Shown here in pieces: positions 14,619 to 58,698 of a stretch of DNA of 64,000 bases. Origin of the DNA: Zygnema circumcarinatum SAG 698-1b. Lineage: Eukaryota > Plantae > Zygnematophyceae. The DNA is taken from contig CM074811.1 in assembly GCA_037447605.1 (NCBI GenBank), forward strand, positions 3,410,001-3,474,000. The letters are read 5' to 3'. The notes under the pieces were generated by a model, which saw nothing but the letters and a program-made list of their open reading frames with translations, was not told the DNA's origin and made no database searches. A program made the translations under genes and the position numbers. Position 1 is the stretch's first letter. Every line of letters starts with the position of its first letter.

Positions 14619-17600
14619 GGTGGAAAATGTGCCTCTATCTCACCTGCTGTCTCAGCCTTAACCTCTGCTGCTGCTGCAGCCTCGCCCGCTTCTCCTGCAT
14701 CGCCTTCTGCCGATCGTCGTAAAAAGTGAAATCGTCCAAAATTGAAGTTTTCGCCGCATAGTTTTTGAAAATCTCAAGAATCTCCAGCCCTTGCTCAAAC
14801 TTCACCTGCCGAAGAAACATCACCGTCACACAAACTTCAATAAATTTTGCCTTCACCCTCAAAACCCAAAGACTCTTCCCTTCCAACACCTCTCCATCTC
14901 GTCCCTCCACGTCCCTATCTACACACACAGACTTTTCCTAAGACTTCTTCGCAAAGTTTCAGCCTATCTCATTCACTTCCAAAGATAAACTGAAGTTCAG
15001 GATTAGGAACAAGAAGAGGGCAGAAATTATGAGAAAGGTAAATTGAAGACAAGCGTAAGAATAAGAATGAAACTAAACGCATTCTCTTTCTCTATCTCTG
15101 GCGCTCTCTCTATCTCACTTCCTCCCTCTCGCGCTCTCTTCCTCTCTTTTCTCCCCCCTCTATCTCTCGCTCTCTCTCTCCCTCTCTCCCCCTCTCCCTT
15201 TCCCTCTGAGAAAGGAAATACGACTATCTGCAGTCACCTACCTCCTGCGTATCTCTACTGTTTGTGACCGGTTTGTTCTCATTGTTTGCCAAAATTATGT
15301 GCCGAAACTGCCCGTTTGGAACATCTTTGATGATGTGCCATTTCACTTTGAACTGCCCACTCCACTTGTCCTGCTGCCAATACTCCACACTCTTCGTGTG
15401 GTCGACCGGCCCGACCATCTCTGCAACTCCGCAGAACTGACCACTCGCATTAACCTGCAAATACAATATCCAGCAGTTAATTTAGCACTAATAAAAACAA
15501 GTTCCAGTACAAATACAGTGTGTATACAGTGTCTACATTCTAAACTTTAGACAAGGAGACAAGAGGAAGTGAAAGGAGAAAAGGATTGCACATTAATCCT
15601 TTTGAGCAGGTTTTGAAATGAAATATTGCTTCCTTCCCAGAAATGGAGGAAACAGGAAATTCTGGACATGCTTTGAGGCAAAACTTTGAGGAGAATTGCG
15701 CATACCGAAAAGAAGAAGAAGACTGGACAGCCTCCCTTCGCTTTCTCTCCCGCCCCCTGTGCCTCCTGATAGGCTGCTTCCAACCTCTTGTTCCCTGTGG
15801 GAGTGCTCGCCCACACCCCATACTTGATGCTCTTGTGCACATCATCTTCACTGTAACTCTTTATCACAAAAAACTTGGCAGCCTCATACTTTGTCCGGAA
15901 ATCTGCCCTGTTATATTCCGATGCTCCCTCCACTCCACTCCCTCCTTGCGGGGCAGCATTGGGTCCTCTCTGTCCTCTCATTCTTATGGTTCTAGGTCCC
16001 CTATTCTGCTCACTAGCAACATCATACAGAGCTGTTCCATTGCCTGTTTGTACTCCCCCATTCCTGCCTCCTCTCCCTCTTCCCTTATCGAAAGCTCCAT
16101 TATATCCTCCTCGCCCGCCTCCTATTCTGTTATCATATCCTCCTCCAGCTCCTCCCCGACCTCTCCCAAACCCATTTTGGCCATTTCTAGGAAGCGATTG
16201 AAAGCCTCGGCCTCCATTAAGGGGAGCCATTCCGGGGGTCTGCACTCCAGCAAGTTGTGGAAATGTCTGCAGAGAAAGAAAAATAAAAACGCATGATTAC
16301 TTCAACCGGATCTCTGCAAAGAGAGTGGAAATGAAGGGGCTGATATGGGAGAATGGTGGAACCCAGGTAAGGAGATGTGCTTGATTTTGGCTGAGGAAAG
16401 GCGAGGCAGGAGAAGCAGAGAGAAGCAGAGAGAAGAGGGCACGAGAGAGTGGGAGAGACAGCGAGAGGAATAAATTCGATGGGGATGCAGGACGGGAGAG
16501 GAAAAGATTTGAGACAAAGAAGATTAGAGAACAGGGTAAGGGCGGAGAGAAAAAGTGCAAGGGATGTATATGTGACAATTCTCATCTGAACTCTAACCTG
16601 ATGCACGCATATAATTTGCACCATGTTAACATCCACACATGCACACGTGCATAATGATGGATGCATCACACGAAGACATGCATGTATGCATGTATGTATG
16701 TGTTTACACACGCGTACATAACCGTGCTACATGCATACCTGCAGAGGAGTCAGAGGCCTCGGCCCTCCACCCTGTGAATTCAAACCCCTCACCGGCATGG
16801 CTGCCCCTGGTCGACGCTGTCTCCCCCCCCACTTTCTATCCGTTACTTTAAGTTCCCTAACTACTGCCATTCCTCATTACTCCTCGCAATTCCAAACTCA
16901 CCATACCTCTCCCTGTTGCTTTCACTTTCAGAGCTCACATCTTCAACGTTTTAAACAAGCCGGTACATATCATCAAATGCAAATGCAAATGCTCCACACA
17001 AAACATTAAAATTCTCAACAAAAGCACCCTATAGAAGGATGATCTATCCTCACATTCATAGTGCCTGGCGGCTGCTCCGACATTGAAATATTCCCATTTC
17101 CATTTCCATTCGCTGCTACCTGCTCTCCCGCTCCTTGATGCGCTCCTTCGCTCCCGTTTCCAGTTCCATTTGCTGCCGTTCCGTTGGCCGTTCCCGGAAT
17201 GTATTGTCCACCAGCTGACATTTGATGCTGGTGGAACATCGGATTAGGGTATGGGAAAGGGGCTTGGGGCCCATATAGCTGCCCATCAACTCCCATCGAT
17301 GGACCTCCAGGACCATATGCGGAATAAGGGCCCGGAGATGGGTATCCATATCCCTGGGGAGTCTGCACATACATAGACCCCGTCTCCGCGTTGTACATCG
17401 CCTGAACAAGAATAATCATGAACCAATGTATGTGAGTGAATGAAGTGTCAAAATTAGGGAGCTTAGGGGTGCACAACCAAGCTGGATGGATAGAGAATGG
17501 TAGGGAACATGAAAGAAACTGTACATAACTCGACAGTGCGTAGCAGATCATGAATGAATATGCAAAACAATGTAGACGGAAACCAATGGAGGGACGAAGA

Positions 17601-33970: not shown

Positions 33971-36900
33971 ATGGCGGCCGCGGACATGGCTGCAGGAGGA
34001 GGAGGAGGACGAGGCGCAGCAGAAGGGAGCGGAGGAAATGGCGGGGGAGGGGGACCGATGTCCCGGCGGGATGAGACATGGCGCCGCCTCTACGTCGAAA
34101 CAAGTCTGAATACGCGCCTGGTGCTGGCGGCTCGTGGTTTCTGGACCGTTCTGCAGGCCAAGAGTGAGTTTGTTTAGTGCTAGGGTTAGGGCTATGGTCG
34201 CTGCTGAAGTGCGTGTCTCGGCCAAGCATAGGGTTAGAAATTTAGGGTGTTAACGTTAGGATCTTGTGGCTCTGCACCAGAAATGCATTCAAATTGCATT
34301 GTGGAGTGATAGTGGAGTGATACGACGTTATCATAATGTCATTCCGGCTTCTTTTCTCCACAGTCTTGTTTTTTTATTTCTTAGTTTTTTCAACAGCATT
34401 GTCATCTACATTTTTTATCAATATCGTCATTTTTTATCTCTTATTGAAGTGGCCTGCGAGTGTGACAAGTGTTGGATTTCATAGTCTCAAGGCATTCTGC
34501 ACCACAAAACATTTGCACGATAGTCCTGACCTTTATACGAGGCCATATATGCACGGCGAGGCCATTTTGTCTTTATGTGTATGTATACTCATGTACTTTT
34601 CTGTGTGGAACTTTGGCTGTGTATTTTTTCCCCTGTAACTGTCTGCTTGTATTTGTATCCATGTATTTTTTTATTTCTCAATATTTATCTGCATCGTATG
34701 ACTGCAGGGGAGTTGGAGGCTGAGTATAACATGATTTTCGGCTATGAAATAATCTGCCGCACATTTGAGGTAAGAACCATTTTAGACTGGAAAAAAAAGA
34801 GAGTTTCGAGCCGCTGCCCTCAATGCATGAGTTTCTACCGCAGGTGCAGGATGTAGGCCTTCCATTTTTTTATAGAGAGAGCGGCAAAGAGACTGACGTG
34901 TTTCCATTTCTAAGTGGTGAAGACTTTGGTTGATGTGCAGACAAATGGTTTTCGATGGGGAAACGCTTATCTGATTGGGGACATGCTTGGTAACAAGGGG
35001 ATGGAAGAAATTTATGCTTTAGTTACAAGAAGGAGTATAGAAGAGATTCCACCGGTTGTGCCATATCCAGAAGAGTTCCCTAGGTTCAGAGAAAGAGCAG
35101 CTGAAGGGTTGGTGGAAGCATTAGAACCACCCCCTTTGCCTCTCCAATTACAGCCACTCATTGTACAGCCCCCCGCTTTACAGCAAGCCGCTGTGCAACC
35201 ACCCGGGCTAGATCCACGATCTGTACAACCTGCAGTCGAGCCAGGTGCTGTTGCGGAAGAAGGTGGGCATAATGACCTGCCAGCTGTTCCTTTGGCGAAC
35301 ATGGGAGGTAATGTAGCTGACGGGGAAGTAGCTGCAGGTCCCCCCGAGGTTGAGGCTACGAGCTCCGGCGTCTTGTTGGTGTCACCCAGTACGGCAGGCA
35401 GTGGAGGAAAAGGCCGAGGACGCGGAAAAGGCTTATCGAGTGCAACAAAGAGGGAGAAACAGCCAAATGTTGAGGGAAAGGATGCACCGAAGAAGCGCCA
35501 GAGGAAACCAAAAGATGGGGAGGCAGTTATAAACGTTGGAGTAGGTCAACCTTTGAGCACTGGACCCATGGATGGAGGAACATTGCAAGTGAACAGGTTT
35601 CAAGATATGGCTGCCGGGCCGTCTAACGTGTCAGTGAACGCGCAGAATGGTAACCCTGAGATGGTAAATGTGCCGGTTTTTTCCGTTGGAGAGAATGGAC
35701 GTGTGGAAGAATCTGCTGAAAGACATGCAGAGGTGGCTTTACCGAGCTCCAATACTTTGCTGGAACTGCCAAAAGTGGGTGGCGGTAGAGGACGAGGACG
35801 TGGAAGTGGTCCAGGGAAAATCTTAGGGACTGAATCGAGTACAGAGAAATCAGCTGCAGGCAAGGAGGCAGGGGATACACCGAAGAAGCGCCAGAGAAAA
35901 CCGAAAGATGGAGGAAAGGTTGCGGATAATAAAACAGAGGAACTCGCCAGAACTGAAGCGCTTAATGAAGCAACGATGCAAGAGAGCCAAGATATGGCTG
36001 CAGGCCCATCCACCCCCGCAGAAACCAGGCAGACTGACGACCCCGAGATGGCAAAAGAGCCAATTCGTTCCCCTGAGGGAAGAGGAGGGAATTTAGGTGT
36101 TGAAGAGCCTGCTGCACAAAATGCCGAGGTGGCTGTACTGGACTCCATTGATTTGTTGGAATCACCAGAAGTGGGTGCCAGCGGACGCGGAAGAGGTAGA
36201 GGACGAGGAACGGGAAGCTTAATGAAGAGAGAGAAGTCTAAGGAGGGAGAGGATACGCCAAAGAAGCGGCAGAGGAAGCAGAAAGATGGAGGTAAATTTG
36301 CGGTTTTGGAAGCAAATGAACTTTTGAGAAGTGAACCTCTCAATGAAGAAAATGAGAACAGGCTTCAAGATACGGCTGCAGGACCATCCACTCTGATAGC
36401 AGACACAGGAAATGTCAATCCTAACATAGCAAAAGAGGCAGTTCTTTCATCTGAGGAGAGAGGGCGGAGTGTCGGCGGGAAAGAACTTGCTGCCGGAGAA
36501 ACAGCAATGGCTGTACCAGGTGCCGGTGATTTTCTGGAATCACCTAAAGTTGGAGATGGAAGAGGCCGAGGGAGAGGTAGAGGAAGTGGAATTGGGAGTG
36601 GAACGAAGCGAGAGAAATCGGCAAAGCCTAAGGAAGGAGAGGATACACCAAAGAAGCGGCCGAGGAAGCAGAAAGATGGAGTGAAACCTGCGGATATGGA
36701 AGCAGGTGAACTTTTAAGAACTGAACCTCTCAGTGGAGGAATGGTTCATGAGGATAGGTTTCAAGATATGGCTGCAAGACCATCCGCTCTGGGTGCAGAC
36801 ACAGAATATGTCAATCCCAATGTGGCCAATGAGCCATTTTTTTCCCTGGAGGAGAGAGGAAGGAATACAGGCGGGAAAGAAATTGCCACAGGAGAAATAA

Positions 36901-38153
36901 CAGTGGCTGGACCAGATCCCAATGATTTGTTGGAATCACCTAATGCTGGAGATGGAAGAGGCCGGGGGAGAGGTAGAGGAGGTGGAAGAGGAATTGGGAG
37001 TGGAACTAAGAAAGAGAAATCAGCAAAGCCTAAGGAAGGAGAGGATACGATAAAGAAGCGGGAGAGGAAGCAGAAAGATGGAGTGAAATCTGCGGATATG
37101 GAAACAGGAGAACTTCTAAGAGGTGAACCTCCCAACGGAGGAACAGTACGAGAGGACCGCGTTCAAGAAACGCCTGCAGGAGCATCCCCTGTGGTAGCAG
37201 AGAGGCAGGATAGCGATTCTGTGATGGTACAGGAGCCTATTCGTTTTCCTGGCGGTAATGGAACTGGAGAAGAAACTGCTACAGGACATGCGGAGGTGGC
37301 TGTACCGGCCGCTGGTGATATCTTGGAATCCCCTAGTGTGGGTGGCACTGGTAGAGGACGTGGAAGGGGTAGAGGAAAAGGCATAGGGAGTGGACAGTAT
37401 AGAGAGAAACCTGCAAAAGTTAAGGAAGGAGGGGGGACGCCAAAGAAACCGCAAAAAAAAACAAAGGACGGAGGAAAAGTTGCGGATATGGTTGTGGGCC
37501 AGGCCTTCGGAACGGATGGGATGGCAAGGCAAGAGCAGAGCCTCTCTCAGACGCCTGTACAGTTCCAAAGTGCTCATATATATACGCATGTACTACCAGC
37601 CCCAACTATGGAGACGGGTAGGCAGAACGGCGAACCTGCGATAGCAAAGGAGGCAGCTGTTACCGAACATCAGAATCACGACTCCTCAGTAACAGACGGG
37701 CCAGCTCTTCCATTTGCGAACGTTGTAGGAAATACTGGTGATGGAAATACAGTTGCAGATCATGCTGAAGTCGTCATAGTGGGCTCTGGTTTGGTGTTGT
37801 CGACACCAGCATCCGGAATTGGTGGAAGCGGAGGACAGGGAAAAGCGGTAGGGAATGGAACAAGAAAAGAGAAGCTGACACCAAAAAAGGGCCAAAAGAA
37901 ACCGAAAAACGGAGAGGAGAAAGCAGGTGTGGGAAATGTCACTGTCGATGCGGGAGCAATGGAAGAACAAGGGATTCAAGAAACTCCTTTAGGGTCACCC
38001 AATATGGAAACAGAAAGGCCCAACAACGAGGAGCCCGCTACCCCTTCAGCAGATGGTAGAGGAGATGGAGGCGCCAAACCGGGCACTCCAGATCGTCCTA
38101 AAGGACGGTCCTTACCAAAGTCACCCCCTTCCAAGAAATCTTCGTTGAAATAA
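33971..38153 (+). CDS. Uncharacterised protein, ~1155 aa; 3 exons (33971-34163, 34708-34769, 34941-38153); N-terminal ubiquitin-like/Net1-N-like domain plus 6-7 RG-rich NLS-containing repeat modules
   Basis: Phase-consistent GT-AG splicing gives RLYVETSLNTRLVLAARGFWTVLQAKRELEAEYNMIFGYEIICRTFETNGFRWGNAYLIGDML...IYALV. The long open third exon contains recurring [16 protein letters not shown]...TPKKRQRKQKDG units. Confidence 0.85.
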
Positions 38154-40750: not shown

Positions 40751-42915
40751 GGCTGTGCCACGTGGCAACAGGAGAGAGGGAGGGAGGGAGAACGGGGAGG
40801 GAAGGAGGAAAGGAGAGGGAGAAAGAGGGAGGGAGGCGGGAGGGAGGGGGGGAGAGGCGAGAGGCGAGAGGGAGGCGGATTTCTCATATAAAGAAGGGGC
40901 TTATGTGTCGGGAATGCAGCAGTTCAGTTGGACACGTGTCGAAGGAGAGGAAGAGGGAGAGGGAGAGGGAGAAGGAGAGGGAGAGGAGATGTTAACCGCT
41001 GTGAGAGAGCAGTGGAGGAGGTACTCTTGGAGTGGCCTGCTCTCGGATAGAGAGGAGGACACGTGGCAAGCGGGGAAGCTCGAGGAGGGAGGATACATGG
41101 GGTCACAGTTCAACGCTGAAACTGCATAGTTCCATGTAGTGGCCCCCCTGCGACCTTGAGCCGTGGTCAGTGGTCGTCCTCGTAAAAATGAATTTGTGAT
41201 GACTCGAATCGTGAACTCCAAAGGTTGTCATATTGTTGTGCGTGTGCCTCTAGAACATGGGCCTTTCATGCTCAATGTTTGCCTGTTTTCAGGATTGTTG
41301 GAGGGGAAAAGGGTTGGGCGAGAGAGAGAAGGGAAACGAGTGCGCATGTGCCCGTTTGACCGTTCTCAACAACAACATGGTTAACCAGTCTCTCACCAAA
41401 GACTTGAAGTGTGGAGCTGAACCGTGTTTAACAAATACTGTACATTAAAGATTTCCAAAAATTTAGGAGAACTATATACCGCCCCCCCTTTTTGGTTATC
41501 CCGCCACTGTTTTTTTGAAATCCGACCCTCCCATTTCGGCTATTCTGCCCCCTGTTTTGAAATATCCCGCCCCCCCCCCCCCATTTTGGATATTCCCCCC
41601 CGTTTTCTCCTTCTCACACATCAGCGCAACGTTCGAGAGAGAGAGCAAAGGAGAGAAAGAGAGTGAGCAGAGTGAGAGCAAAGGAGAGAGAGACTAGAGT
41701 AGAGAGCACAGGAGAGAGCAAAGGTGAGAGAAGAGAGAGAGAGCAAAGGAGCGAGAGCCGAGGGGAGAGAGTATAGAGGAGAGAGAAAGTGCAGAGGAGT
41801 GAGAGTAAGGGAGAGAGAGACTAGAGGAGAGAGCAAAGGAGAGAGAGACTAGAGGAGAGAGCACAGGAGAGAGCAAAGGAGAGAGAGAGAATGAGCAGAG
41901 GAGAGAGCAAAGGAGAGAGAGAGAGTAGAGTGAGAGCAAAGGAGAGAGACTAGAGGAGAGAGCAAAAGAGAGAGAGAGAATGAGCAGAGGAGAGAGAGTA
42001 AAGGAGAGAAAGACTAGAGGAGAGAGAGCAGAGGAGANNNNNNNNNNGGCCGGCCGGGCCGGCACGTCTCTCGCATGGGGTTCCGCAGGAGAGGGAGGGG
42101 GAGGGGGAGGCGGAGGGGGAGGGGGAGGGGGAGCCGCTCGGGGGACTACCTTTGGAGCGTGACGTGACATGGAGGTGGCACGGCTGGCGCTCTGCCCCAT
42201 GGCTGTGCCACGTGGCAACAGGAGAGAGGGAGGGAGGGAGAACGGGGAGGGAAGGAGGAAAGGAGAGGGAGAAAGAGGGAGGGAGGCGGGAGGGAGGGGG
42301 GGAGAGGCGAGAGGCGAGAGGGAGGCGGATTTCTCATATAAAGAAGGGGCTTATGTGTCGGGAATGCAGCAGTTCAGTTGGACACGTGTCGAAGGAGAGG
42401 AAGAGGGAGAGGGAGAGGGAGAAGGAGAGGGAGAGGAGATGTTAACCGCTGTGAGAGAGCAGTGGAGGAGGTACTCTTGGAGTGGCCTGCTCTCGGATAG
42501 AGAGGAGGACACGTGGCAAGCGGGGAAGCTCGAGGAGGGAGGATACATGGGGTCACAGTTCAACGCTGAAACTGCATAGTTCCATGTAGTGGCCCCCCTG
42601 CGACCTTGAGCCGTGGTCAGTGGTCGTCCTCGTAAAAATGAATTTGTGATGACTCGAATCGTGAACTCCAAAGGTTGTCATATTGTTGTGCGTGTGCCTC
42701 TAGAACATGGGCCTTTCATGCTCAATGTTTGCCTGTTTTCAGGATTGTTGGAGGGGAAAAGGGTTGGGCGAGAGAGAGAAGGGAAACGAGTGCGCATGTG
42801 CCCGTTTGACCGTTCTCAACAACAACATGGTTAACCAGTCTCTCACCAAAGACTTGAAGTGTGGAGCTGAACCGTGTTTAACAAATACTGTACATTAAAG
42901 ATTTCCAAAAATTTA

Positions 42916-43506
42916 GGAGAACTATATACCGCCCCCCCTTTTTGGTTATCCCGCCACTGTTTTTTTGAAATCCGACCCTCCCATTTCGGCTATTCTGCCC
43001 CCTGTTTTGAAATATCCCGCCCCCCCCCCCCCATTTTGGATATTCCCCCCCGTTTTCTCCTTCTCACACATCAGCGCAACGTTCGAGAGAGAGAGCAAAG
43101 GAGAGAAAGAGAGTGAGCAGAGTGAGAGCAAAGGAGAGAGAGACTAGAGTAGAGAGCACAGGAGAGAGCAAAGGTGAGAGAAGAGAGAGAGAGCAAAGGA
43201 GCGAGAGCCGAGGGGAGAGAGTATAGAGGAGAGAGAAAGTGCAGAGGAGTGAGAGTAAGGGAGAGAGAGACTAGAGGAGAGAGCAAAGGAGAGAGAGACT
43301 AGAGGAGAGAGCACAGGAGAGAGCAAAGGAGAGAGAGAGAATGAGCAGAGGAGAGAGCAAAGGAGAGAGAGAGAGNNNNNNNNNNGAGAGAGAGAGAGTA
43401 GAGTGAGAGCAAAGGAGAGAGACTAGAGGAGAGAGCAAAAGAGAGAGAGAGAATGAGCAGAGGAGAGAGAGTAAAGGAGAGAAAGACTAGAGGAGAGAGA
43501 GCAGAG

Positions 43507-43554
<48 letters not shown>

Positions 43555-44337
43555 CGAAGGAGCGAGAGCCGAAGAGAGAGAGTATAGAGGAGAGAGCAAA
43601 GGAGAGAGAAGAGAGAGAGAGAGCAAAGGAGCGAGAGCCAAGGAGAGAGAGTATAAAGGAGAGAGCAAAGGAGAGAGAGAGTGAGTAGAGGAGTGAGAGC
43701 AAAGGAGAGAGAGACTAGAGGACAACAGACAGATTTTACAACCCACGTGTCCTTCTTCTTGGAAAACGTCGCCCTAATCTCGAAAGGGCAATTTTTCAAG
43801 CGGCTGGAAGTATTCCTCTTCTTACTACTCTCTTCCAGACCTCTGTCCTCGTAGGTCCCCCCGCTATAGCATTGTAGGTAGAGTCGGCGGCTATCGCTAT
43901 GCTTGCCGATCTTGATGTGAAATCCTTCCTGCTTGTAGTGCTTAGTCAAGACTTGTACAAGCTCATCGCGAGTCTTATACTCAGTCATTTGTGTGGAGAT
44001 TGCAAACCGAGAGGAAGAAGGGAAGGGNNNNNNNNNNAGGGGAGGGGAGGGGAGGGGTGGGCAGGGGAGGGGAGGGGAGGGGAGAGGACGGGAGGGGAGA
44101 GGACGGGAGGGGAGGGCAGGGAAGGGGAGGGAAGGGGAGGGGGAGGGGAGGGGGAGGGCAGGGGAGGGGAGGGGAGCGGACGGGAGGGGCGGGAAAGAAA
44201 TATTCAAAAAAGGGGGGCGATCTCCTCCCGAAATATCCAAAATGGGGGAGGGGGGCAGAATAGCCGAAATGGGAGGGTCGGATTTCAAAAAAAACAGTGG
44301 CGGGATAACCAAAAAAGGGGGCGGTATATAGTTCTCC
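42916..44337 (-). mobile_element. Non-autonomous Mutator-like element: ~140-bp TIRs, 8-bp TSD AAAATTTA, FAR1/WRKY-GCM1-type transposase N-terminal fragment and internal GA-rich minisatellite
   Basis: GGAGAACTATATACCGCCCC... at 42916 (also 41466) is the reverse complement of the end at 44337. AAAATTTA sits at 42908-42915 and 44338-44345. There are two internal N gaps. Confidence 0.85.
43722..43988 (-). pseudogene. Truncated MULE transposase DNA-binding domain
   Basis: MTEYKTRDELVQVLTKHYKQEGFHIKIGKHSDSRRLYLQCYSGGTY...RNTSSRLKNCPFEIRATFSKKKDTWVVKSVC fits the FAR1-type zinc-finger pattern. It is cut off by the minisatellite before the expected HNH, and there is no DDE domain. Confidence 0.8.
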
Positions 44338-44718: not shown

Positions 44719-45796
44719 TCATCCCTTTCCTGCTGCTGCTCCACTCTCTCCAGTAGGGTGCAGCCATTCGCCGTTAATAGTAACCTCCCTATTATGGTCA
44801 AGTAGCCCTCCTCGCCCTAATCCCCACCCTTCCATCTCCTCCTCCTCCTCCCCACTCCCTCCATGCCCTCTCTCTCCCTCTCCCTCTCCCCCACCCAACC
44901 CTCTCCCACCAGCACTCGCTGATGCCGCCACCTCACTACCGTCTCTCTCGCTCTCTCTCTCACTATCAAAGCCGCAATCCGACCACCTCCCTGAGACCCC
45001 GTACGGCTCTCTCTCCTCGCCCACCCTCCCACTATCTTCTCCCTTTGCTTCTCCTCCTCCTCCTTCTCCCCCTCCTCTCCTTCCCTCTCTCTCCCCGTTA
45101 CCATTGCTATCTTCCTCTTCTCCCCTGCGAGATGAAAAGCTTCCCCTCCCAGAAATAACAGAGGCAGCATTCGGGAGCGGAGGGCATTTTATTCGGACGC
45201 TTCCTCTGCAGAAAATAATGAAGAAAAACAATAAAGGAAATGTTATTCAATTCAACAAATAGATAATGATGAAATGAAAAGCAAAGTCTATGGGGATTTA
45301 CTAGCCCTTTCGTGGTATTCTTAGGGCTTTCAGGGCTTGAAACAGTTGGTGTTTTTAGGGTTTTTAGGGTTTAAGGGGGAGCTTAAGGGCAGAACCTTAA
45401 GCTGGAGAAGCTGCCTGTACGGCTGGGGGGGTTCTTTGTGGCCGACTGTGGAGGGAAAATCCGTTGCAGGCGACGGTTAACCATTTCTATGAAGTGCTGC
45501 TCAACTTCCGCCAGAGATTTCTGATGGCTCTCGTGCAGGCTCTGCAGGGAGAGAGAAAAAATAAGAAAGAAATAAGAAAGAAAAATGAAGGAAAGCAAGG
45601 AAGTAAAGAAAGGGGAGGGGAGCAGAGGAGGGGCTAAAAAACTAAGGAAAAAAGGCAGCGATTTGCTGGGCTGTTTTAGCATATTAGAAGCTGGAAATAA
45701 TAAACTATGGTTTTCAAGATTAGAAATTTTACATGCTGATCTTCCTTGCAGACTCAAACAGAACTAGCACAACCTAAATTAACTAAAACTATATCG

Positions 45797-45827
<31 letters not shown>

Positions 45828-48800
45828 GTAAATGTTTATATAGATATACGTTTTTCAATTTATATGTATATATGTTTATAATGACCTCCAAGCGGGCGGA
45901 AAACGCAGCGAGCTGCTTCGCGCGAATGCGCTCCTGCGCCGCAAAAATGTGATCCAACACCAACACTCGCTGGCAGTCGGCTGCGGAGGGAGAGAGAGAG
46001 AGAGGGAGGGAGGGAGGAAGGGAGGAGTTAGAGAGAGTGGGGAGAGAGGCGAGATAGAGAGGGAGGGAGGGAGGAAGGGAGGGAGGAGTGAGAGAGAGTA
46101 GGGAGAGAGGCGAGAGAGAGAGGAAGGGAGGGAGGAAGGGAGGAGTGAGAGAGAGTGGGGAGAAAGGCGAGAGAGAGAGGGAGGGAGGAAGGGAGGAGTG
46201 AGAGAGAGTGGAGAGAGGCGAGAGAGAGAGGGAGGGAGGGAGGGAGGAAGGGAGGAGTGAGAGACAGTGGGGAGAGAGGCGAGAGAGAGTGAGGGGGAAA
46301 AGGGGGAGAGAGAAGATCGAGGGATTGAAAGACGGAGGAAAGATAATTAGGATTTCAAAGACCTCTTTTTCTCTCTCCCTCTCGTGCATATATGCGCAGG
46401 ACGGAGAAGGGGTTGAGAGGGACAAGGAGACGGGATGGATGGGAGAGGGAGAGAGGGAGTGAAGGGATATGGGAAGCGTGAACAGAAGACAGGAAGGAGT
46501 GGGAGGAGCAAATGCAGAAGGGGAGAGAGTGAGGGAGCGAGTGAGAGAGAGACGGAGAGAAGGGAAGTGAGGTAGAGGAAAAGCTTGAGAATACAAGGGG
46601 TCAAGAGAAAGCGGGAGAGACAGAGTGCTTACCTAAAGACAGCATCACCTCTTCCCCTCCCTCCTGCCTCCCCTCTCCCTCCCCCTCCCCCTCCCTCCCC
46701 TTCTCCAACCTATCCTCAACTCCACCGCTGTATTGCGACAACAATGGCTCCAACAAACCCTCTCTCTTGCTCTCTCGTCCCCTTTCCCACTCCCTCCCCC
46801 TCTCTCTCTCCCCTCTCCCCCCTTGCTCTCCCACTATGCACAGACTTCCAGTACCTTTCGAACTACTTTTTGGGACCTTTTCTCCTTCACATTGTCCCGG
46901 GAGAAATTCAGCAATTTCCGACTTCATAGAATTAACCCCTATTCCAGGACTAAATGAAGAAATTTCTCGATTTAAAGCAAAAGTCGGCCCCCTATCTTCG
47001 ATTTTAAACCGTCCGAAAACTCTCGGGTCATCCAAAGTCTCTCCCACTCCTCCTCCTCTCCTACCCCCATCTCCTCTCCCTCCCCCTTCTCCCTCTCCTC
47101 CCACTCCTCTCCTGAACGTCCCCATTCCAGGATGAAGTTTCGAACTACTCTCAGCCAAATTTTGGTTCGGAGGTGGTAAATTCTGTGCTCGTAGTTCGCC
47201 GTTGTTTGCTGAAAATTCAGACTTCAAATTTTCTTTATTCGACATAGAAAGGGGGCTCAGAGCTCCTCCGTTAAACGGACTGAGCAGCTCCTCCAACAAA
47301 TGGTCGTCGAAAAAGAGGTCGACGTTATTGCCAAATCTGCAAGTGACACGTGGCACTGTTATACCTTCCGTCAAGGAAAAAAAGACGTGAAACAAAATTT
47401 CAAAAAACAGTGGTTCCATGCTCTTCAAATCTTCAATCGTTTCGGCCACTCGAAAAAACTAGTCTAATCAGTTTTCTCACTATTTTTCTCACTAAAAACG
47501 CTCTCAGAACTACATCAGTCAAGTCAGTAAACATTCCATAAGTGTTGACCTCCAACCTCTCCAACCTTTACAAACATATAAAACTACGTTTTTTAAACTT
47601 TGAGTTGAGTTGAGTTGAGTTGTTTTTGAACTTGTATGTTTATTTTTTCGAGGAACTTTTTTTTTTTTTTAGGTCAAAGAAGCATGCGAGCAAACAAACC
47701 ATACATACATGGAGGCGGAGGTCTGCGTGTTCCTCCTATAGAGCATCCTTGAGGAGTGCACTGCGTCCTCCATGATGTAAATGAACACGTTGAGGACGCA
47801 GTAGATGAAGCACATCACAAAGGAGACAAGGAACACCCTCCCAATCCACTGCACCTCCTGCGTGTACTGCCGGAAGGTTCCATGCATGTCGTCTCCGTTC
47901 ACGATGCTGGAAAACGGCAAACGGAACGGAACGGAACGGAGCATGGAACGGTCAAGGGAACAGTCGACAGGGGAGGGGAGGGAGGGAAGGGGGGAGGGAG
48001 GGGGGTGAGGGAGGGAGGGAGGGAGGGAGGGAGGGAGGGAGGAGGGAGGGAGGGAGGGAGGGAGGGAGGGAGTGGAGGGAGGGAGGAGGGAGGGAGGGAG
48101 GAGGAGGGAGGAGGGAGGGAGGAGGAGGGAGGGAGGGAGGGAGGGAGGGAGGGAGGGAGGAGGGAGGGAGGGAGGGAGGGAGGGAGGGAGGAGGAGGGAG
48201 TGGAGGGAGGGAGGGAGGAGGGAGGGAGGGAGGGAGGGAGGGAGGGAGGGAGGGAGGGAGGGAGGGAGGGAGGGAGGGAGGGAGGGAGGGAGGGAGGGAG
48301 GGAGGAGGGAGGGAGGGAGGGAGGGAGGGAGGGAGGGAGGGAGGGAGGGAGGAAGACAAAGATGAGGGGAGTTCCATGTTGGAAGGGGAACAGAAAGTTT
48401 TGAACGGTTTTTTGTTTGGCTTCGTGCTTGATTGAAAGGCAGTGGGAGGAAGAGGGGAGGAGGAGGAGAAGAGAGAAAAGGAGGAGAGAAGAGAGGGTGG
48501 TATATGGCAAGTAAGTACCAGAACAAGGTGATTGCGGAATCTCCGAAGGTTCGGAACGTATCTGCGAATGCGCCGAAAAAGGTCCATCCAAATAAAACAT
48601 AGCCTGCAATTCGAAGGACAGGAAAGTAGGACAAATTTGAATGAAAGGAAGGAGATTATGTAAATGTTACTAAAACGTATGGTAGGAAAGTTGGATTTAT
48701 AAGAACGACACAAGAGAGGGGGGCGGCGAGAGGGAAAGAGAGAGAGAGAAGGGGGGTGGGAGAGTGTGTGTGTGTGTGTGTGAGAGGGAGAGAGAGAGAG

Positions 48801-51249
48801 AGAGAGGGAAGGAGGGAAGGAGGGAGGGAGGGAGGGAGGGAGGGAGGGAGGGAGGGAGGGAGGGAGGGCCTCGCTGGAACGTTACCCACAAAGACGGGGC
48901 CTATAGCAACCACAAGTCGCAGAATGTACGGAAGGCCTGTCCGCATTGCGAACAGTATGATCGCCATCTCGTCGTTGAACCTGCGCATGATGCCGCCAAG
49001 GGGGGGGCTTTAGACACATCTCACACTTATTTTCCTCTTTTCATGTAAACGTTCGTACATGCATACATACGCATGCATGTGTATGCATGTGCATGCATGT
49101 TTGCATGTGCATGCATTTGGCGGCGCATGGGACTCACTCAAAGTACTGCGTGTTCTGCACCCACGCGAACGCCGCGCCGAGGCCCATGATGAGGTGGATC
49201 CACCTGTGCGCGCCACGTCAGCCTCCTATGACAAGTGAGCTTTAGGGTTCTTAGGGTTTTAGGGGGGTTAGGGCAGGGTTCAGAAAATGAATCAGGCGAG
49301 GCGAGCAACCCAGCCCCCCCTCCCCCTCCCCTCATACTAAAACCCTGCATCCCTGAACCCTGCAAGGAGGGTTCCCCCCCACCCACCAGTGGCGGTCGAG
49401 CGGGAGCGCGCTCGCCGGGAGGAGGTACATGGTCGAGCTGACGGCGCAGCACACGTCACAGATGACGGTAGCAACGCCCCATAGATTGAAAAACCGAAGC
49501 TTGTCCTGCACCATGCATGCATGGATGTATGTATGGGCATGAATGGATGATCTATGGATGGCCACATCCATGCATGCATGCATGCATGGGTGGATGTTTG
49601 TATGTATGTATGTATGTATGTATGTATGTATGTATGTATGGCCATGAATGGATAATCTATGGATGGCCACATGCATGCATGCATGTTCGACATATGCATC
49701 CATGCGAGCACGCACGCATGGATGCATGGTCCCATGGACAATGGCATGCCCGGCATAGGCAAGGAGGCAAAGGGGCTCACGTTGAGAGAGAACGACTCCC
49801 AAAAGAACGGCGGCCATTTCCCCGCGAGGTGGCTCGAGCTCGCCGCCGTGTAGTGCATCCGCACCGTCCGATACATCTCACACGATCTGGACCGTCCGTC
49901 ACGCTTACAACGTCAGATCCTGCGAATCTTCCAGAAAAGATTCTAGTAATCTGAAATGTCAGATCTACTTCGAGATCACATTGAAGATCCACAGATGCGA
50001 TTGTGACTTGATACCTTTTAGAATCCACCGATTCAGAGGTAAATATTTGAAAAATCTTTTCAGATTTACCTGGATATGGACCGAATCGTAAGGACCAATG
50101 AGGCGAGCGAGAGGGCGATCACAGATACGGAGATCCAAAAGATTGCGCTGCTCGGATGCGTCCACCACCGACTTTCCGTCTCCTTCTCGCGGCAGAACTC
50201 ATCCGTCGCTTGCCGCCAAAACATGCTGCCCGCAATCATTACGGACCCGTCCAATCAGACAAAAAAAACGAGCGTCAGCGCACCCCGTCCAAAATTAATA
50301 ACAAATTTATGCCCTGCAAGAAGCAACGGTCAGCGACGACTGACAAAAAAAAAAAAAAAAAAAAAAAAATCCCGTCTTGTTAAAATTGTGACGGGCAGGC
50401 AATCCCGGGGAAGGCATAAAACGTATCGAGATACTTGGGTATATTGCGATATGAGATATAGTCGATATATCGTACCGAAAGTCGAGGCGAATATGAGACG
50501 CCTTGGAGAAGTCGTATCGGTGGCGCAGGTCCCATAGCCAGCACGCGGGGGGGAGTCGGCCGGAGGGGTCCGAGGCCAAATTGTGGACAAAATATTTCAG
50601 TTCTACCCACTCCAAATATTGGGAAACTTCGCGGATCTGAAAGCAGAGGAGGAACAGGAAAGCAGAGCACGAGTTCAACAAAAAAAAAAAAAAAAGCCAA
50701 AACTCGAAAGTTTTAATGAAAAAAAAGTATTTTTTTTCTTTTCAAAGTCCTTGTTATCATGCGCACCTGCGTCAAATTGTTCAACTGAAAGGGTCCGTAC
50801 GGAGGGCTTGTCAGGATATACGTTTCACCTGCCCGAAAGAAAAACCAAACAAAAAATAACTTCATAAAAAAAAAATTATTAAATAACTCAAAATCCCTCA
50901 AGTCATGAGACCCCCTCCTCCAAACCTTCCTCCAACTTTCTCCTTCTAATATTTCAAACATCTCTCCCTTTTTTATTTTTTGCTAAAATAAAATTAAAAT
51001 TTCTCAATCTCGTACCTACCGTCTTTGCCCATGGTCCATTCCCGCCCGGCGGGCCCCAACCGGTCCTTAAAGTCAACCGTCATGATGACATCTCCAAAGG
51101 GCGCAAAGTCCCCCACAAAGTCAAAGTCCTGCATGCCGCGCAGCGCCATCATGACGTGCCGTACGCTGTCGGCGAAGTCCGAATATTTGCGGATCGCATA
51201 GGCCGCCCCCCGGGGCCCGCTGCTCGCAACCTGCTACCGCCAAAAACAA

Positions 51250-51307
<58 letters not shown>

Positions 51308-53391
51308 GGAAAGGGGAAAAAGGAGTTGGCAATCGGGCGCAGAAAGAAAAAGAAAATTAAAGAATAGAAGAAGAAGAAGAAGAGTAGTAAAAGAGAAGAA
51401 AGAGTATTGAGGAGTAGAAAATTTTGAAGTACATAGTGGATATTTATAGAGTTAACCACCGGGGAGTATATCCATGAGGTTGAAGGAAAAGATAGAAGGG
51501 GGAGAAGGGGGGAAGGAGGGAAGTGGGGGAGGGGAGGGGGGGGGGGAAGAGAGGGAAGAGGGGGAGAGGGAAAAGGGGGGAGAGGGAAAAGGGGGGAGAG
51601 GGAAGGGGGAGGAGGAGGGAGGGGGATGGGGGAGGAGGGGGGAGGAGGAGGGAGGGGGATGGGGGAGGGGAGGGGGGGAAGAGAGGGAAGCGGGGGGAGA
51701 GGGAAAAGGGGGGGGAGAGGGAAGGGGGGGAGGAGGGGGGGGGGGTGGAGCGGGAGAGGGAGTGAGTGGAGAGGGAAGGGGGAGGGGAGAGAGGGAGGGG
51801 GGGGGGAGGAGAGGGAGGGGGGTGGAGGAAGGGAGGGGAGGGGGATGAGAGGGAAGAGGGGGGGAGAGGGAAAAGGGGGGAGAGGGAAGGGGGGGGAGCG
51901 GGAGAGGGAGAGAGGGGGGGGGAGGAGAGGGGGGGGAGAGGGGGGAGGGAGGGGGGAGGAGAGGGGGGAGGAGAGGGAGGGGGTGGAGGAAGGAGGGAGG
52001 GGGATGAGAGGGAAGAGGGGGGGAGAGGGAAAAGGGGGGGGAGAGGGAAGGGGGGGGAGCGGGAGAGGGAGAGAGGGGAGAGGGAAGAGGGAGGGGGAAG
52101 AGGGAGGCGTGGGGGGGAGGAGAGGGAGGGGGGTAGGGGAGGGGAGGGGGGTACCTCCATATCTTCCTGAATGAATATATTGCGCAGCGATTCTTGAGTG
52201 TGTTCTATGTATCTGGTGCTTCCGTTCAGATATGAGACCTGCGTTCCATGCGTCAAATCAACGAAAATGATCAAATTTTCCACATTTTTCAAATCTGCCG
52301 ACAATTATCCCGAGTTATTTCCGATAAAGCGTCGGCGATAAAAAGAAATGGGCTGAGTATAGATGGTGCTTGCGTTTTAGGGTTTAGGGTTTTTGGAAGG
52401 CTACACACGTACTTGAATTGTAACGAGCAGCGTGAGAGCCATGTGAATCATGAATTTCCATGGCGGCCTGCAACCAGAAGAAGTGGGCCAAAGAAAAACC
52501 CTTTATTTTTGGTTTTAAACAGGTTAAATAGGTTACGTAGACCATTCCCGCAGTGATTATCATCATGTTCAAAAAACTCAAGCATTCAGGGTATCGGTCA
52601 ATTGACCAAATAGCTGATTAGCATTGAAGCATGTCAGCAATGTTCGAACATATTAGTTTCTAACTCAAATTTGCTGCTCTCAAGAAGCATGAGCTTATCA
52701 AATCAATACAAGTTATCAGATTAGAACTAAGATTTAGATCGGATAACTCAATGCACGTGTGAGTATGCGATAGAACATTTTTTCTTGTTAGAGGGAACAG
52801 TCGCTTAAATCTTTAAACATTCTCTCTATTCGCGAGGAGAGAGAGAGGGGGGGGTATGGGGGCGGGGGAGTGTGTGAAGATCTGAGAGGGGGAAGGAGAG
52901 GGAGTCCGGGCTGGAAGTAGCGTGAGGGGGCCATGGGGTGGGGGAAGAGCGAGTGGGAGAGAGGCACAGAGAGAGAGAGGGAGAGAAAGAAAGGCAGTGG
53001 GAGAGAGGGGGAAACGAGCGACAAAGAGAGAGTGGGGATGGGTAAGAGGGAGAGAGAGACGACGATGAGGGGCAAGATTCGATGTGGAGGAAGAAGCAGT
53101 TACTTGAATTGGAGAGGAGAGAGGAAGGAAAAAAAAATAGAACAGAGTGACAGAGAGGAGCCAAGGAGCGGTGACGGTGGTGAATAAAAGAAGGAAAAAA
53201 GAGCCAGAAAGTAAGAAAGGACCCAGTGAGGCGGTAATCAGAGACTAAACGAGGGAGGAATTCCGACAGAGTGGGAGAGAGAGAGAAGAGAGGAGAGCTT
53301 CTGACCTTCCGTACTTCTTCCACTTCATCCACGGGCTGAGAATGAGCCTGTCGGACGCAGGCATCGCCTTTGACCGATTTTGATCCGCCAT
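44719..53391 (-). CDS. MCOLN: Mucolipin/TRPML-like cation channel, ~17 exons, ~990 aa with a long C-terminal tail
   Basis: Spliced product shows LILSPWMKWKKYGR, an S1 segment, a luminal domain (CWLWDLRHRYDFSKASHIRLDF), S2 AIFWISVSVIALSLASLVLTIRS, DKLRFFNLW, MGLGAAFAWVQNTQYF, TGLPYILRLVVAIGPVFVGYVLFGWTFFG, pore FRTFGDSAITLFCIVNGDDMHGTF and S6 FIYCVLNVFIYIMEDA. Junctions from exon 2 onward are phase-consistent. The exon 1 (53391-53306) to exon 2 (52613-52537) junction is not resolved. Confidence 0.93.
47970..48355. repeat. (GGGA)n intronic tract splitting the TRPML pore-helix and selectivity-filter exons
   Basis: Direct inspection. Confidence 0.95.
51495..52150. repeat. G-rich polypurine intronic tract
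   Basis: Direct inspection. It lies between TRPML exons 52238-52155 and 51230-51020. Confidence 0.93.
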
Positions 53392-55800: not shown

Positions 55801-57895
55801 CTACGAGTCCCTACTGTCGCCGCCTTCCTTCCCTCTCGCATCTTCTCTCTCTTCATCGAGGTTTGGCTCCAAACGAACCTCCTCCTCCTCCTCCTCATGT
55901 TCGGCACCTGTCGCCGGTTTATCCAACGAGCAATGATGAGCAACCTGCATATCATATCCGCAAATTCTCTGAATCGTTAGTAGGTGATCGGCAATCGAGC
56001 TTCGATACAGAGAGAGACAAGTAAAGAATTGTCTGTGCAATTGAGAGGGAGAGAGAGAGAGAGGGACAGAGCGATTTAACGAGATGGGAAAAGGGGGAGA
56101 CAGTTTGGGAGAGAGGGTGGTGGAGAGAAATAAGAGAGGCGGATTTGAGAAAGGGGGTGTAAGAGGGAGGGAGGGAGGGGGGGAAAGAGGGAGAGAGGGA
56201 CAGAGGGGGAGGGAGAGACAGACTCCTGCACACACATACCTGTACGGCAGAAGCCCCTCCCGTTTCATTCGCACATCGCTTCTCCTCTCCCTCAATCTCT
56301 CCCTCTCTCGCCTCTCCTTCTCTTGCATCCGCATCACCTTTCGTCAGAGAGTCATTCTCACATCGCCCTCCTCCCCTCCATCCTCCCTCCCTCTCCTCCC
56401 TTTCTGGAAGTACAGAAAGGACCCCTTCTCCTCCTTCTCCGATAGCACTACTCAAAGCCACTCTCAACTGCTCCCCACGCAGTGGAGAGGAAGGAGGCGC
56501 CCTCAGGAGGGTGGGAGAGAGAGGGGTCTCATTACCCAGTAAGGGCTTTCTGGTCTTTTGGGTCTCAATCAAAGCTCTTCTGAGAGGAGGACTCTGTGGG
56601 AGAGGGAGAGGGGCTCTCTCTGAGGGAGGCGAAGAGGATACCAGATCCGGCGGAAGCTTCTGCGCAGCTTCGTTCTCTCCGAGACAGTTGCCAGGACGCC
56701 AAGGAGGGGAATTCGGAGAACTTGTCCCGGAAAAGTCGGCAAAATCCCGGACCCATTTTTGCTTTTCCTGCTTGCCATTAATATTATTCACGTTTTCTTT
56801 ATTTTTAGGAGATGCCGCTCCCTTTTTCTCCTCCAGATAGTCTGCCCAAATGCCTCCATTTGCACTGAAGCTCACATTTTGAAGGCGGGATTTAGCGCGA
56901 GAGTCAGGGAATAGACTGAAGGGGAGCTTTGATTCAGTGGAGGATAGCGCATACTGCTGCACTGAAGAAGGGGGGAACGGGGAAGAGGGAGGGGAGGGAG
57001 GGAGAGAAAGAGAGAGGGAGAGGGAGCGGCCTCCGCCTCTCTCATTGTCGTAGAATATGTAAGCGAGGCCTTCCGAGGGGGGGGGGGCTCTTACTGGTTT
57101 TAAGGGGGGAGGGAAGGGAGAGGGTGACTTAGTTGGAGAGGAAGAAAGGGAGGAGATTCGGTGGGAGGGAGAGAATGAGTGGGGAAAGCGGGGAGGAGGG
57201 GAGAGAGGGGAGAGAGAGAGAGGAGAGGCAGAGAGATCTACTGATCCCAGTGAGAGAGAGGAGTCCGGAGACCGCTGAGGAGTAGGAGAGATCTCCGGAG
57301 ATGGTCCAGGAAGGACAAAAGGAGGAGAATTCACCCCCCCATAAAATGATAATCTTGAATTTTCTTTGCCATTCTCCATAAAATGCACTTCTTCTTGCGC
57401 AATTTCGGGGCTTTGCAGCACTCCCTTGACGACCCATACAGCGGAATATCGCCTTTTTCGTGGAGATCCTCTCCCCTCAATCCCTCCAGGAAGACCGCGA
57501 GGGGGAGAGCCTCTCCCTCCCCCTCTCTCCGCTCTCCTTCCTCCTCCTCCCTCCCCCTCCATCTCCCTCTCCTGCATTCGAGTGTACCGCAGGGGCCCCT
57601 TATCGTCCCGAGACCCCGCCCTTGGAGTCGTAGTCCTTGGAGACCAACTTCCTAGGGTCCACTCTCCCGGCGAATCCTCGCCTAACACCTGGCGCCACGT
57701 GGGAGCGTAGGAGGGACACGTGTCAGTCTGTGAAAGCTGGGAGACGTACGGACGGCCCAGGCGGGCAGCTGCTTCCAGCATCATCTCCTTTTCTAAGGAG
57801 CGACGAGCGGGAGAGAGAGGGCCTTCTATGGCGCGCAGGTGAGAGAGAGCTGCACGTCGGGCGCGCAGGGGTTTCGGGGGGGTTTTTGACGCCAT
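55801..57895 (-). CDS. Intrinsically disordered Ser/Pro-rich protein (~600 aa) with KEN boxes; 2 exons (57895-56240, 55944-55801)
   Basis: The ORF stays open for >1.6 kb through non-repetitive sequence. MASKTPPK follows a CT-rich leader. Phase-0 CAG/GTATGT donor and ATGCAG/GTT acceptor. No folded domain recognised. Confidence 0.65.
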
Positions 57896-58330
57896 GGATG
57901 GAAGCTTGGGAGGTAAAGGAAGGTGGTTTATTAGACGGAGAGAGCGGAAGGAGGGAGGTGGTGACAGAACATAGCAAGGTGGGAGTTGCGGTGTCGAGAG
58001 GGGGAGGAGAGGGAGAGAGAACTGAGGTGGAGAGAACGAGAGGAAGAGGAAGGTAAGATGGAGAGACAGGGAGATGGCTATCGAGACTGAGAGGGAGTGG
58101 GAAAGGCAGGAAAACGAGAGTGGGAGAATGGGAGGGAAAGAGGGAGGGAAAGAGATGGTGAGATGGAGGAGAGGGAGAGGGGGTGGGAGTGCGCAGAATG
58201 CAGGAGACAACGGTACAGAGGGAGAGAATGTGCGGGAGCTGGCCCGGGAGGGAGGGAGGGAGGGAGGAAGAGGGAGAGGCAGAGGGAGAGGAGGTGCCGT
58301 GCGTGTGCACACGTCCTCGGATGTCGGAAG

Positions 58331-58698
58331 TGGCCGTTCGGAAGTGACGGCGGGGGTCGCCACGTCGGCACTCGGCAACCTCTGCCTGTCCACATGGCAT
58401 CCCACGAATGGGTACTTAGTGCCACGCAGCCGATGGCCTTCTCTGATTGGCGGAGAGCGTGCCACGTCATCCCCGAGGCGGGCCCGTCCCGGCCGCGGGA
58501 AGTTTCGCGCCGTCGGATTTGGGCCGGCGCTTTGGGCCGTTGGGGGCGCAGGGGTAGAAGCTTCGAGGAAGGTGCGAGAGAGGAAGGAAGTGAATGTTCA
58601 CACTATGGGAATGGCTCGCATAGCTTGGGGAGAGAGCGTCGTTAACATTTGTTGGGGCTAGAACGAAGCTGAGGGTGGGTCATACGCTAGCCGTTGGG
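58331..58698 (-). promoter_or_regulatory. Three MSA-like (AACGG) elements plus a CCAAT box upstream of the KEN-box gene
   Basis: On the minus strand: CCCAACGGCTA (58688-58698, exact YCYAACGGYYA), CCCAACGGCCC (58534-58544) and CCGAACGGCCA (58331-58341). CCAATC lies near 58445. Confidence 0.5.

Follow-up and report, generated by a model that had tools for sequence, protein, structure and literature searches.

Does an alga of the streptophyte lineage still carry a functional transient receptor potential (TRP) channel gene? Land plants are reported to lack TRP channels, which do occur in chlorophytes (PMC7312350, PMC12806904, PMC11085791, PMC10762896), in agreement with what an earlier note on the locus studied here had stated, and one review dates their complete loss to early plant evolution (PMC7312350, PMC11085791). 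The green algae sampled in a TRP-wide survey were chlorophytes only (PMC9242649). We found no paper linking TRPML, mucolipin or polycystin to streptophyte algae, and the main texts of the Mesostigma/Chlorokybus genome paper and of the Zygnema genomes paper mention neither TRP nor ion channels. The DNA analyzed is a stretch of 64,000 nucleotides (the window) from Zygnema circumcarinatum SAG 698-1b (contig CM074811.1, positions 3,410,001 to 3,474,000), in which the earlier note had recognized an intact-looking mucolipin (TRPML) channel gene at 44719-53391. Sequence comparison, structural modelling and analogy with TRPML1-3 suggest that this locus is very probably a functional nuclear gene for a TRPML-family subunit, inherited within the streptophytes and predicted to encode an endomembrane cation channel.

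On the minus strand a gene with 17 exons was assembled from 53391 to 44719, with the ATG at 53391 and the stop codon ending at 44719. Matches obtained by tblastn with full-length relatives were used as guides to the exons, and frame-keeping GT and AG sites were enumerated at every boundary. The coding sequence comprises 2919 nucleotides, that is 972 codons and a single terminal stop, and the chained exons contain no internal stop and no frameshift. All 16 introns have GT-AG borders, and the acceptors are pyrimidine-rich. Read in six frames, the interval 44719-53391 consists of short stop-free blocks with CT-rich low-complexity sequence between them.

Hydropathy analysis of the predicted protein showed six transmembrane segments (S1 at about residues 32-48, S2 at 248-266, S3 at 313-337, S4 at 349-366, S5 at 389-410 and S6 at 452-475), with a loop at residues 49-247 between S1 and S2. 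The basic motif SPWMKWKKYGR precedes S1 (residues 19-29, encoded by 53337-53306 and the first base of exon 2 at 52467). The selectivity-filter motif NGDDM (residues 433-437) is encoded at 47885-47899 on the minus strand, and its N-G-D is invariant in the family alignment. The cysteine before IVNGDDM is encoded by a split codon, with TG at 48520-48519 in exon 12 and C at 47906 in exon 13. The resulting LFCIVNGDDM (residues 428-437) aligns with LFSLVNGDDM of mucolipin-2. The earlier note had named the six segments, the loop, the basic motif, the filter and the split codon, and all of them are present at the positions it gave. Furthermore, every family-invariant residue of the pore and of S6 is retained.

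Relatives were sought among 1.84 billion representative proteins (clustered at 50%) by searching exhaustively with the pore/S6 exon (phmmer), which yielded 75 matches. The best full-length ones were Mesostigma viride Mv12479 and Chlorokybus atmophyticus Chrsp94S08249; with the latter as query, Mesotaenium endlicherianum ME000403S06863 was found in addition. The Mesotaenium protein is the closest relative, showing 49.9% identity to the spliced model over residues 7-493 (E 2.6e-177). The strength of this match, together with that of the pore exon to solved mucolipins (E 2e-7), excludes a chance origin of the gene model. The Mesostigma and Chlorokybus proteins are 36-37% identical to the model, amoebozoan, jakobid, oomycete and metamonad proteins 22-30%, and fish polycystin-2 23% over 119 amino acids only. 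Among candidates of 180-574 amino acids, a word-indexed search with the pore exon found no match. Twenty further matches looked up by cluster were mostly metagenome or Sequence Read Archive contigs, with no named land plant among them in this library clustered at 50%.

In a tree of 30 proteins calculated with IQ-TREE, the Zygnema sequence and its three streptophyte relatives fall into one clade (SH-aLRT 99), and the Zygnema and Mesotaenium genes are sisters (99); PKD2 lies outside this clade on a very long branch. The strong support for this clade, whose branching order does not conflict with the species tree, fits vertical inheritance within streptophyte algae. The streptophyte lineage supposed in the earlier note is borne out by the three nearest relatives, all of them streptophyte algae, and by a fructose-1,6-bisphosphatase (FBPase) of the chloroplast type on the contig.

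To which TRP family does the protein belong? Compared on its own with solved structures in the PDB, the pore exon matched mucolipin-2, -3 and -1 only (E 2e-7 to 1e-2). A clade profile was built from seven sequences, the three streptophyte orthologues and four protist relatives. This profile spans the mucolipin-2, -3 and -1 chains end to end (profile positions 23-484; E 2.6e-70 to 2.6e-61), whereas PKD2L1 and PKD2 match it across S4-S6 only (E about 4e-15 to 1e-11). Its positions 64-245 align with the isolated luminal domains of ML2 and ML1 (6hrs, 6hrr and 5tja; E 1e-9 to 9e-6). The N-terminus of an orthologue alone gave no match when searched with phmmer against the PDB. The core of the Mesotaenium orthologue was modelled with AlphaFold2 (predicted local distance difference test score, pLDDT, 84.7; predicted TM-score, pTM, 0.77). 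The model contains an alpha/beta domain at residues 51-209 and agrees with the hydropathy of the Zygnema protein on six transmembrane helices and an S1-S2 loop of about 200 residues. In a Foldseek search with this model, ranks 1-36 were all occupied by chains of TRPML1, TRPML2 or TRPML3 (E 1e-20 to 5e-13, TM-score 0.57-0.68), and PKD2 ranked below all of them (E about 1e-10, TM-score about 0.5). On the basis of the full-length mucolipin profile match, the pore-exon match and the ranking in the fold search, the predicted protein is a member of the TRPML family and not a polycystin. The earlier note had drawn the family from the NGDDM signature; profile, single-exon and fold searches likewise group the protein with TRPML1-3 and apart from TRPP.

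Constraint on the gene could be estimated with a 1.1-kb genomic contig of a related organism (Logan SRR24581284), on which exons 12, 13 and 14 have counterparts bounded by splice sites at the same three positions. The exon proteins of the two organisms are 59-81% identical; the introns are unalignable. Over 113 codons, the proportion of synonymous differences (pS) was 0.70, which is saturated, that of nonsynonymous differences (pN) 0.16 and dN/dS 0.08. This ratio and the intact reading frame argue strongly that the gene is under purifying selection.

By analogy with TRPML1-3 of known structure, the protein would assemble into tetramers that form a non-selective cation channel permeable to Ca2+. 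Such a channel would reside in an acidic endomembrane, that of an endosome, a lysosome-like compartment or a vacuole, pass luminal cations into the cytosol and be controlled by phosphoinositides bound at a basic cytosolic pocket of the pre-S1 and S1-S3 regions. The basic pre-S1 cluster MKWKKYGRPPWK is kept in the Zygnema protein, where it includes K23, K25, K26, R29 and K33; K, R, P and K of this segment are invariant across the seven-sequence alignment, and the segment aligns with SPCEKYRARRQIPWK of mucolipin-2. The arginine at the cytosolic end of S2 is retained as well, and, in line with TRPML structures, the pore helix has an LF motif, the filter reads NGDD and S6 follows the TRPML pattern. 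Because these elements are kept, a phosphoinositide-regulated, tetrameric, Ca2+-permeable channel would be expected.

Three other explanations concern the nature and the origin of the gene. A polycystin-2 or TRPP-type channel, similar to the flagellar PKD2 of Chlamydomonas, has a certain appeal, since PKD_channel is the only Pfam model for the region. Polycystin-2 and PKD2L1, group-II TRP channels with an extracellular S1-S2 domain, share this pore module. The PKD_channel model scores 32-56 bits in the three orthologues (cut-off 22.4); with the Zygnema pore exon alone it reached a sub-threshold 19.6 bits over a partial domain, the sole Pfam match in the single-exon scan. In addition, fish polycystin-2 weakly matches the Chlorokybus orthologue. 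However, PKD2 and PKD2L1 align across S4-S6 only and with far weaker E values than the mucolipins, which align over their full length, and all 36 TRPML chains outrank PKD2 in the fold search. The filter NGDD is of the mucolipin type and unlike that of polycystins, the Pfam scan of the orthologues and of the tail exons of the window revealed neither an EF-hand nor a polycystin tail domain, and PKD2 stands outside the clade on a branch of length 2.5. A TRPP channel would show full-length similarity, with the polycystin S1-S2 domain, and a C-terminal EF-hand/coiled-coil tail; as the alignment is confined to S4-S6 and no EF-hand or PKD2 tail domain was found, TRPP identity was rejected, and we give it very little credence. 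The gene might instead be a decaying relic of an ancestral TRP gene from which a channel is no longer made. The loss reported for land plants could then be under way in this lineage, the gene is known from genomic sequence alone, and the tail is of low complexity. Seventeen exons without stop or frameshift and with canonical splice sites, a dN/dS of 0.08 in the comparison with a relative in which the introns can no longer be aligned, and the complete set of invariant pore and S6 residues speak against decay, and on these grounds a pseudogene was rejected as very improbable. An origin outside the plants, through contamination or through horizontal acquisition from a non-plant eukaryote such as an amoebozoan, could be suspected because the nearest named relatives beyond the streptophytes are amoebozoans, a jakobid, an oomycete and a metamonad. 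Yet these are 22-30% identical to the model versus 36-50% for the streptophyte proteins, the streptophyte clade is well supported in an order compatible with the species tree, a chloroplast-type FBPase gene lies on the same contig, and the CT-rich style of the introns is common to the whole window. With the clade, the gap in identity and the plant-type FBPase in view, contamination and horizontal transfer were rejected and appear extremely improbable.

A fourth explanation accepts a genuine TRPML channel and questions its gating or its location: the channel would not be gated by phosphatidylinositol 3,5-bisphosphate (PI(3,5)P2) or would not be vacuolar. It could then act at the plasma membrane or in a contractile-vacuole or exocytic pathway and be gated by pH, by Ca2+ or through its long tail. 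Several observations point this way or otherwise weigh against the interpretation favored here. Y355 and R403 of TRPML1 are the pair that couples PI(3,5)P2 to the channel; at the positions of the profile alignment that presumably correspond to them, the streptophyte proteins have Gly or Val and Gln, respectively. The second basic residue after the pre-S1 arginine is replaced by proline. Because of these replacements, lipid gating may be different or absent. The conserved tail of about 480 residues has no animal counterpart, and Dictyostelium mucolipin acts on post-lysosomes and in exocytosis. Plasma-membrane activity like that of TRPML3 is possible. The fourth position of the filter varies among the orthologues (NGDSI, NGDNI), and therefore selectivity may vary. 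The gene model was built by comparative and ab initio prediction from genomic DNA only. Furthermore, the tree contains no animal TRPML and has PKD2 as its only outgroup, so that monophyly with metazoan TRPML rests on the profile and the fold ranking. Against the idea of different gating or location stand the retained basic residues K23, K25, K26, R29 and K33 before S1, the arginine at the cytosolic end of S2, and the fact that plants and algae produce PI(3,5)P2 via FAB1/PIKfyve. Taken together, a TRPML channel that is not gated by PI(3,5)P2 or not vacuolar is a possibility to be taken seriously, although we consider it unlikely; an endomembrane cation channel of the TRPML family remains our preferred interpretation.

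Along the minus strand, the exons follow the order of the domains. Exon 1 (53306-53391), located by tblastn with P0080, P0077 and P0081 and ending at the donor AAG|GTCAGA, encodes the N-terminus from the ATG and most of the basic pre-S1 motif, SPWMKWKKYG(R). Exon 2 (52413-52467) completes the arginine of the motif and continues with PPWK and S1 (WKFMIHMALTLLVTIQ); it is 60-65% identical to its counterparts in Mesotaenium and Mesostigma. The next exons were delimited by tblastn with the relatives and by splice sites. The luminal S1-S2 domain begins in exon 3 (52155-52238) and continues through exon 4 (51020-51233), where an alternative acceptor at 51230 is equally possible (NAGNAG) and where the protein has an insertion of 14 amino acids compared to Mesotaenium. 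It extends over exon 5 (50767-50828), which contains a YGPF motif, and exon 6 (50476-50636), which contains a conserved C-W-x-W. Exon 7 (50070-50225), for which hydropathy was used in addition, encodes the end of the luminal domain and S2. The cytosolic S2-S3 linker is encoded by exon 8 (49781-49886), DKLRFFNLW and S3 by exon 9 (49387-49505) and S4 (WIHLIMGLGAAFAWVQNTQYF) by exon 10 (49138-49203).

Exon 11 (48886-48980; 73% identity to Mesotaenium) comprises the S4-S5 linker and the first half of S5. The remaining part of S5 and the pore helix are encoded by exon 12 (48519-48603), which ends with the TG of the split cysteine codon at the same donor position as in the contig of the related organism. 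Filter and S6 (C-IVNGDDM...NVFIYIMEDAV...YRRNTQTSAS) are encoded by exon 13 (47709-47906), which matches PDB structures of mucolipin-2, -3 and -1 and is 73-81% identical to Mesotaenium and the related organism. The junction to exon 14 reads SASIFG, in agreement with NSIFG in Mesotaenium and an identical splice in the related organism. Exon 14 (46633-47336; donor AG|GTAAGC) contains a conserved acidic, dileucine-like block, FFDDHLLEELLSPF (47314-47273), a low-complexity stretch and EPLLSQ (about 46756-46736). The first half of a conserved C-terminal helix (DCQRVLVLDHIFAAQERIRAKQLAAFSARLE) lies in exon 15 (45886-45980; splice sites and tblastn with P0080, P0006 and P0077), the second half (SLHESHQKSLAEVEQHFIEMVNRRLQRI) in exon 16 (45396-45541; tblastn and splice sites). 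A Gly/Glu-rich tail and the stop codon form exon 17 (44719-45205), which was joined through the phase-compatible donor 45396 and acceptor 45205 and has two weak collinear matches. The least certain parts of the model are exon 17 and the low-complexity middle of exon 14, which might conceivably harbor internal introns. The introns, including intron 12 (47907-48518), are rich in microsatellite-like CT/CCCT sequence, which in translation reads as PPSL repeats. In the frame of the exons, intron 12 contains no stop, and exons 12 and 13 thus share one open frame of 328 codons; therefore, lists of open reading frames in this genome overstate coding length.

Mammalian TRPML1, TRPML2 and TRPML3 (e.g., PDB 9ekw, 6aye, 5wj5 and 7sq7) share with the Zygnema protein the six-transmembrane fold, the luminal S1-S2 domain, the pre-S1 segment SPxxK...R.P.K, the LF of the pore helix, the FIY..L..FI pattern of S6 and an identical NGDDM filter. 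In the fold comparison they reach TM-scores of 0.64-0.68. They are only about 18-20% identical to it, and, unlike the mammalian channels, the Zygnema protein has only a short segment ahead of its SP motif. The tail is a further difference, with about 480 amino acids and conserved motifs of its own in the streptophyte-specific form versus about 60 in mammalian TRPML. The Mesotaenium, Chlorokybus and Mesostigma proteins are built in the same way, with the long tail, the DDxLLxELLxP block and the C-terminal helix; among them the fourth and fifth filter residues differ (variants NGDSI, NGDNI and NGDDI) from NGDDM in Zygnema, and their tails diverge in the low-complexity parts. The block directly after S6 conforms to DDxL[LM]xE[LM]LxP in all four streptophyte proteins, and the C-terminal helix has a length of about 65 residues. 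Neither the block nor the helix has a match in Pfam. As a speculation, the tail may have a role in sorting, assembly or regulation.

The TRPML-like proteins of protists (the Amoebozoa Flabellula, Cavostelium and Pyxidicula, the jakobid Stygiella and the oomycete Lagenidium) have the core, SPxxKW.KY.R.P.K and an NGD filter in common with the Zygnema protein. They fall into the same large clade opposite PKD2 but outside the streptophyte clade, and their tails are mostly shorter. A more distant TRPML-like gene was observed on a 16-kb contig with 59% GC from a compact eukaryotic genome (Logan SRR20204234; L003:6252-8273). The pre-S1 region of this gene bears a striking resemblance to that of the streptophytes (LSPFAKWTKYGRVPWKF); the filter reads NGDGV, and the gene adjoins FYVE, kinase and cyclophilin genes.

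The surroundings of the channel gene were also inspected. A multi-exon FBPase gene is located at 2869-4655 on the plus strand, with an FBPase_C domain at 4377-4655; its exon matches four plant chloroplast-type structures (5iz1, 1spi, 1dbz and 1d9q) with E 1e-42 to 2e-47, and other FBPases with E 1e-24 and weaker. At 15227-16296 on the minus strand, a YTH domain (YT521-B-like, of the N6-methyladenosine-reader type) is divided between two or more exons (Pfam E 2e-26 and 1e-14) and is preceded by a Gly/Arg-rich region. Since this gene and the plant chloroplast-type FBPase are found on the same contig, contamination of the contig is unlikely. Just downstream of the channel gene, at 40904-43113, a block of about 1450 bp occurs twice, with identical translated open reading frames (40904-41663 and 42354-43113). 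Gaps of 10 N bracket the duplicated block (42038-42047, 43376-43385 and 44028-44037). The duplicate is either a tandem repeat or a duplication introduced by scaffolding or assembly. Very long open frames of 1079 and 881 codons, without Pfam match, are present at 34914-38150 (plus strand) and 55955-58597 (minus strand), respectively. An Rfam scan of the window gave no match.

What does the gene add to the history of TRP channels in plants? The earlier note would have given up novelty if orthologues were already well described across streptophyte algae; in the literature we found they are not. However, the published gene sets of three algae (Mesostigma, Chlorokybus and Mesotaenium) already contain orthologues as unnamed models, and the gene extends a known family. 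Likewise, persistence of the channel in streptophyte algae does bear on the date of TRP loss, as had been proposed, but the dating argument already follows from Mesotaenium. The significance is limited accordingly: the family is well known, orthologues are in public gene sets, and the function is a prediction. The algal ancestors of land plants could have released vacuolar Ca2+ in response to PI(3,5)P2 through the channel of this streptophyte clade with its conserved long tail, kept up to the common ancestor with Zygnematophyceae and perhaps surviving unrecognized in some bryophytes, lycophytes or ferns; we regard this as a rather improbable extension. If it were true, survival in bryophytes, lycophytes or ferns would mean that land plants can no longer be said to lack TRP channels. 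For plant biologists, the gene offers a specific candidate both for an endomembrane channel that releases Ca2+ and for a PI(3,5)P2 effector in the algae nearest to land plants.

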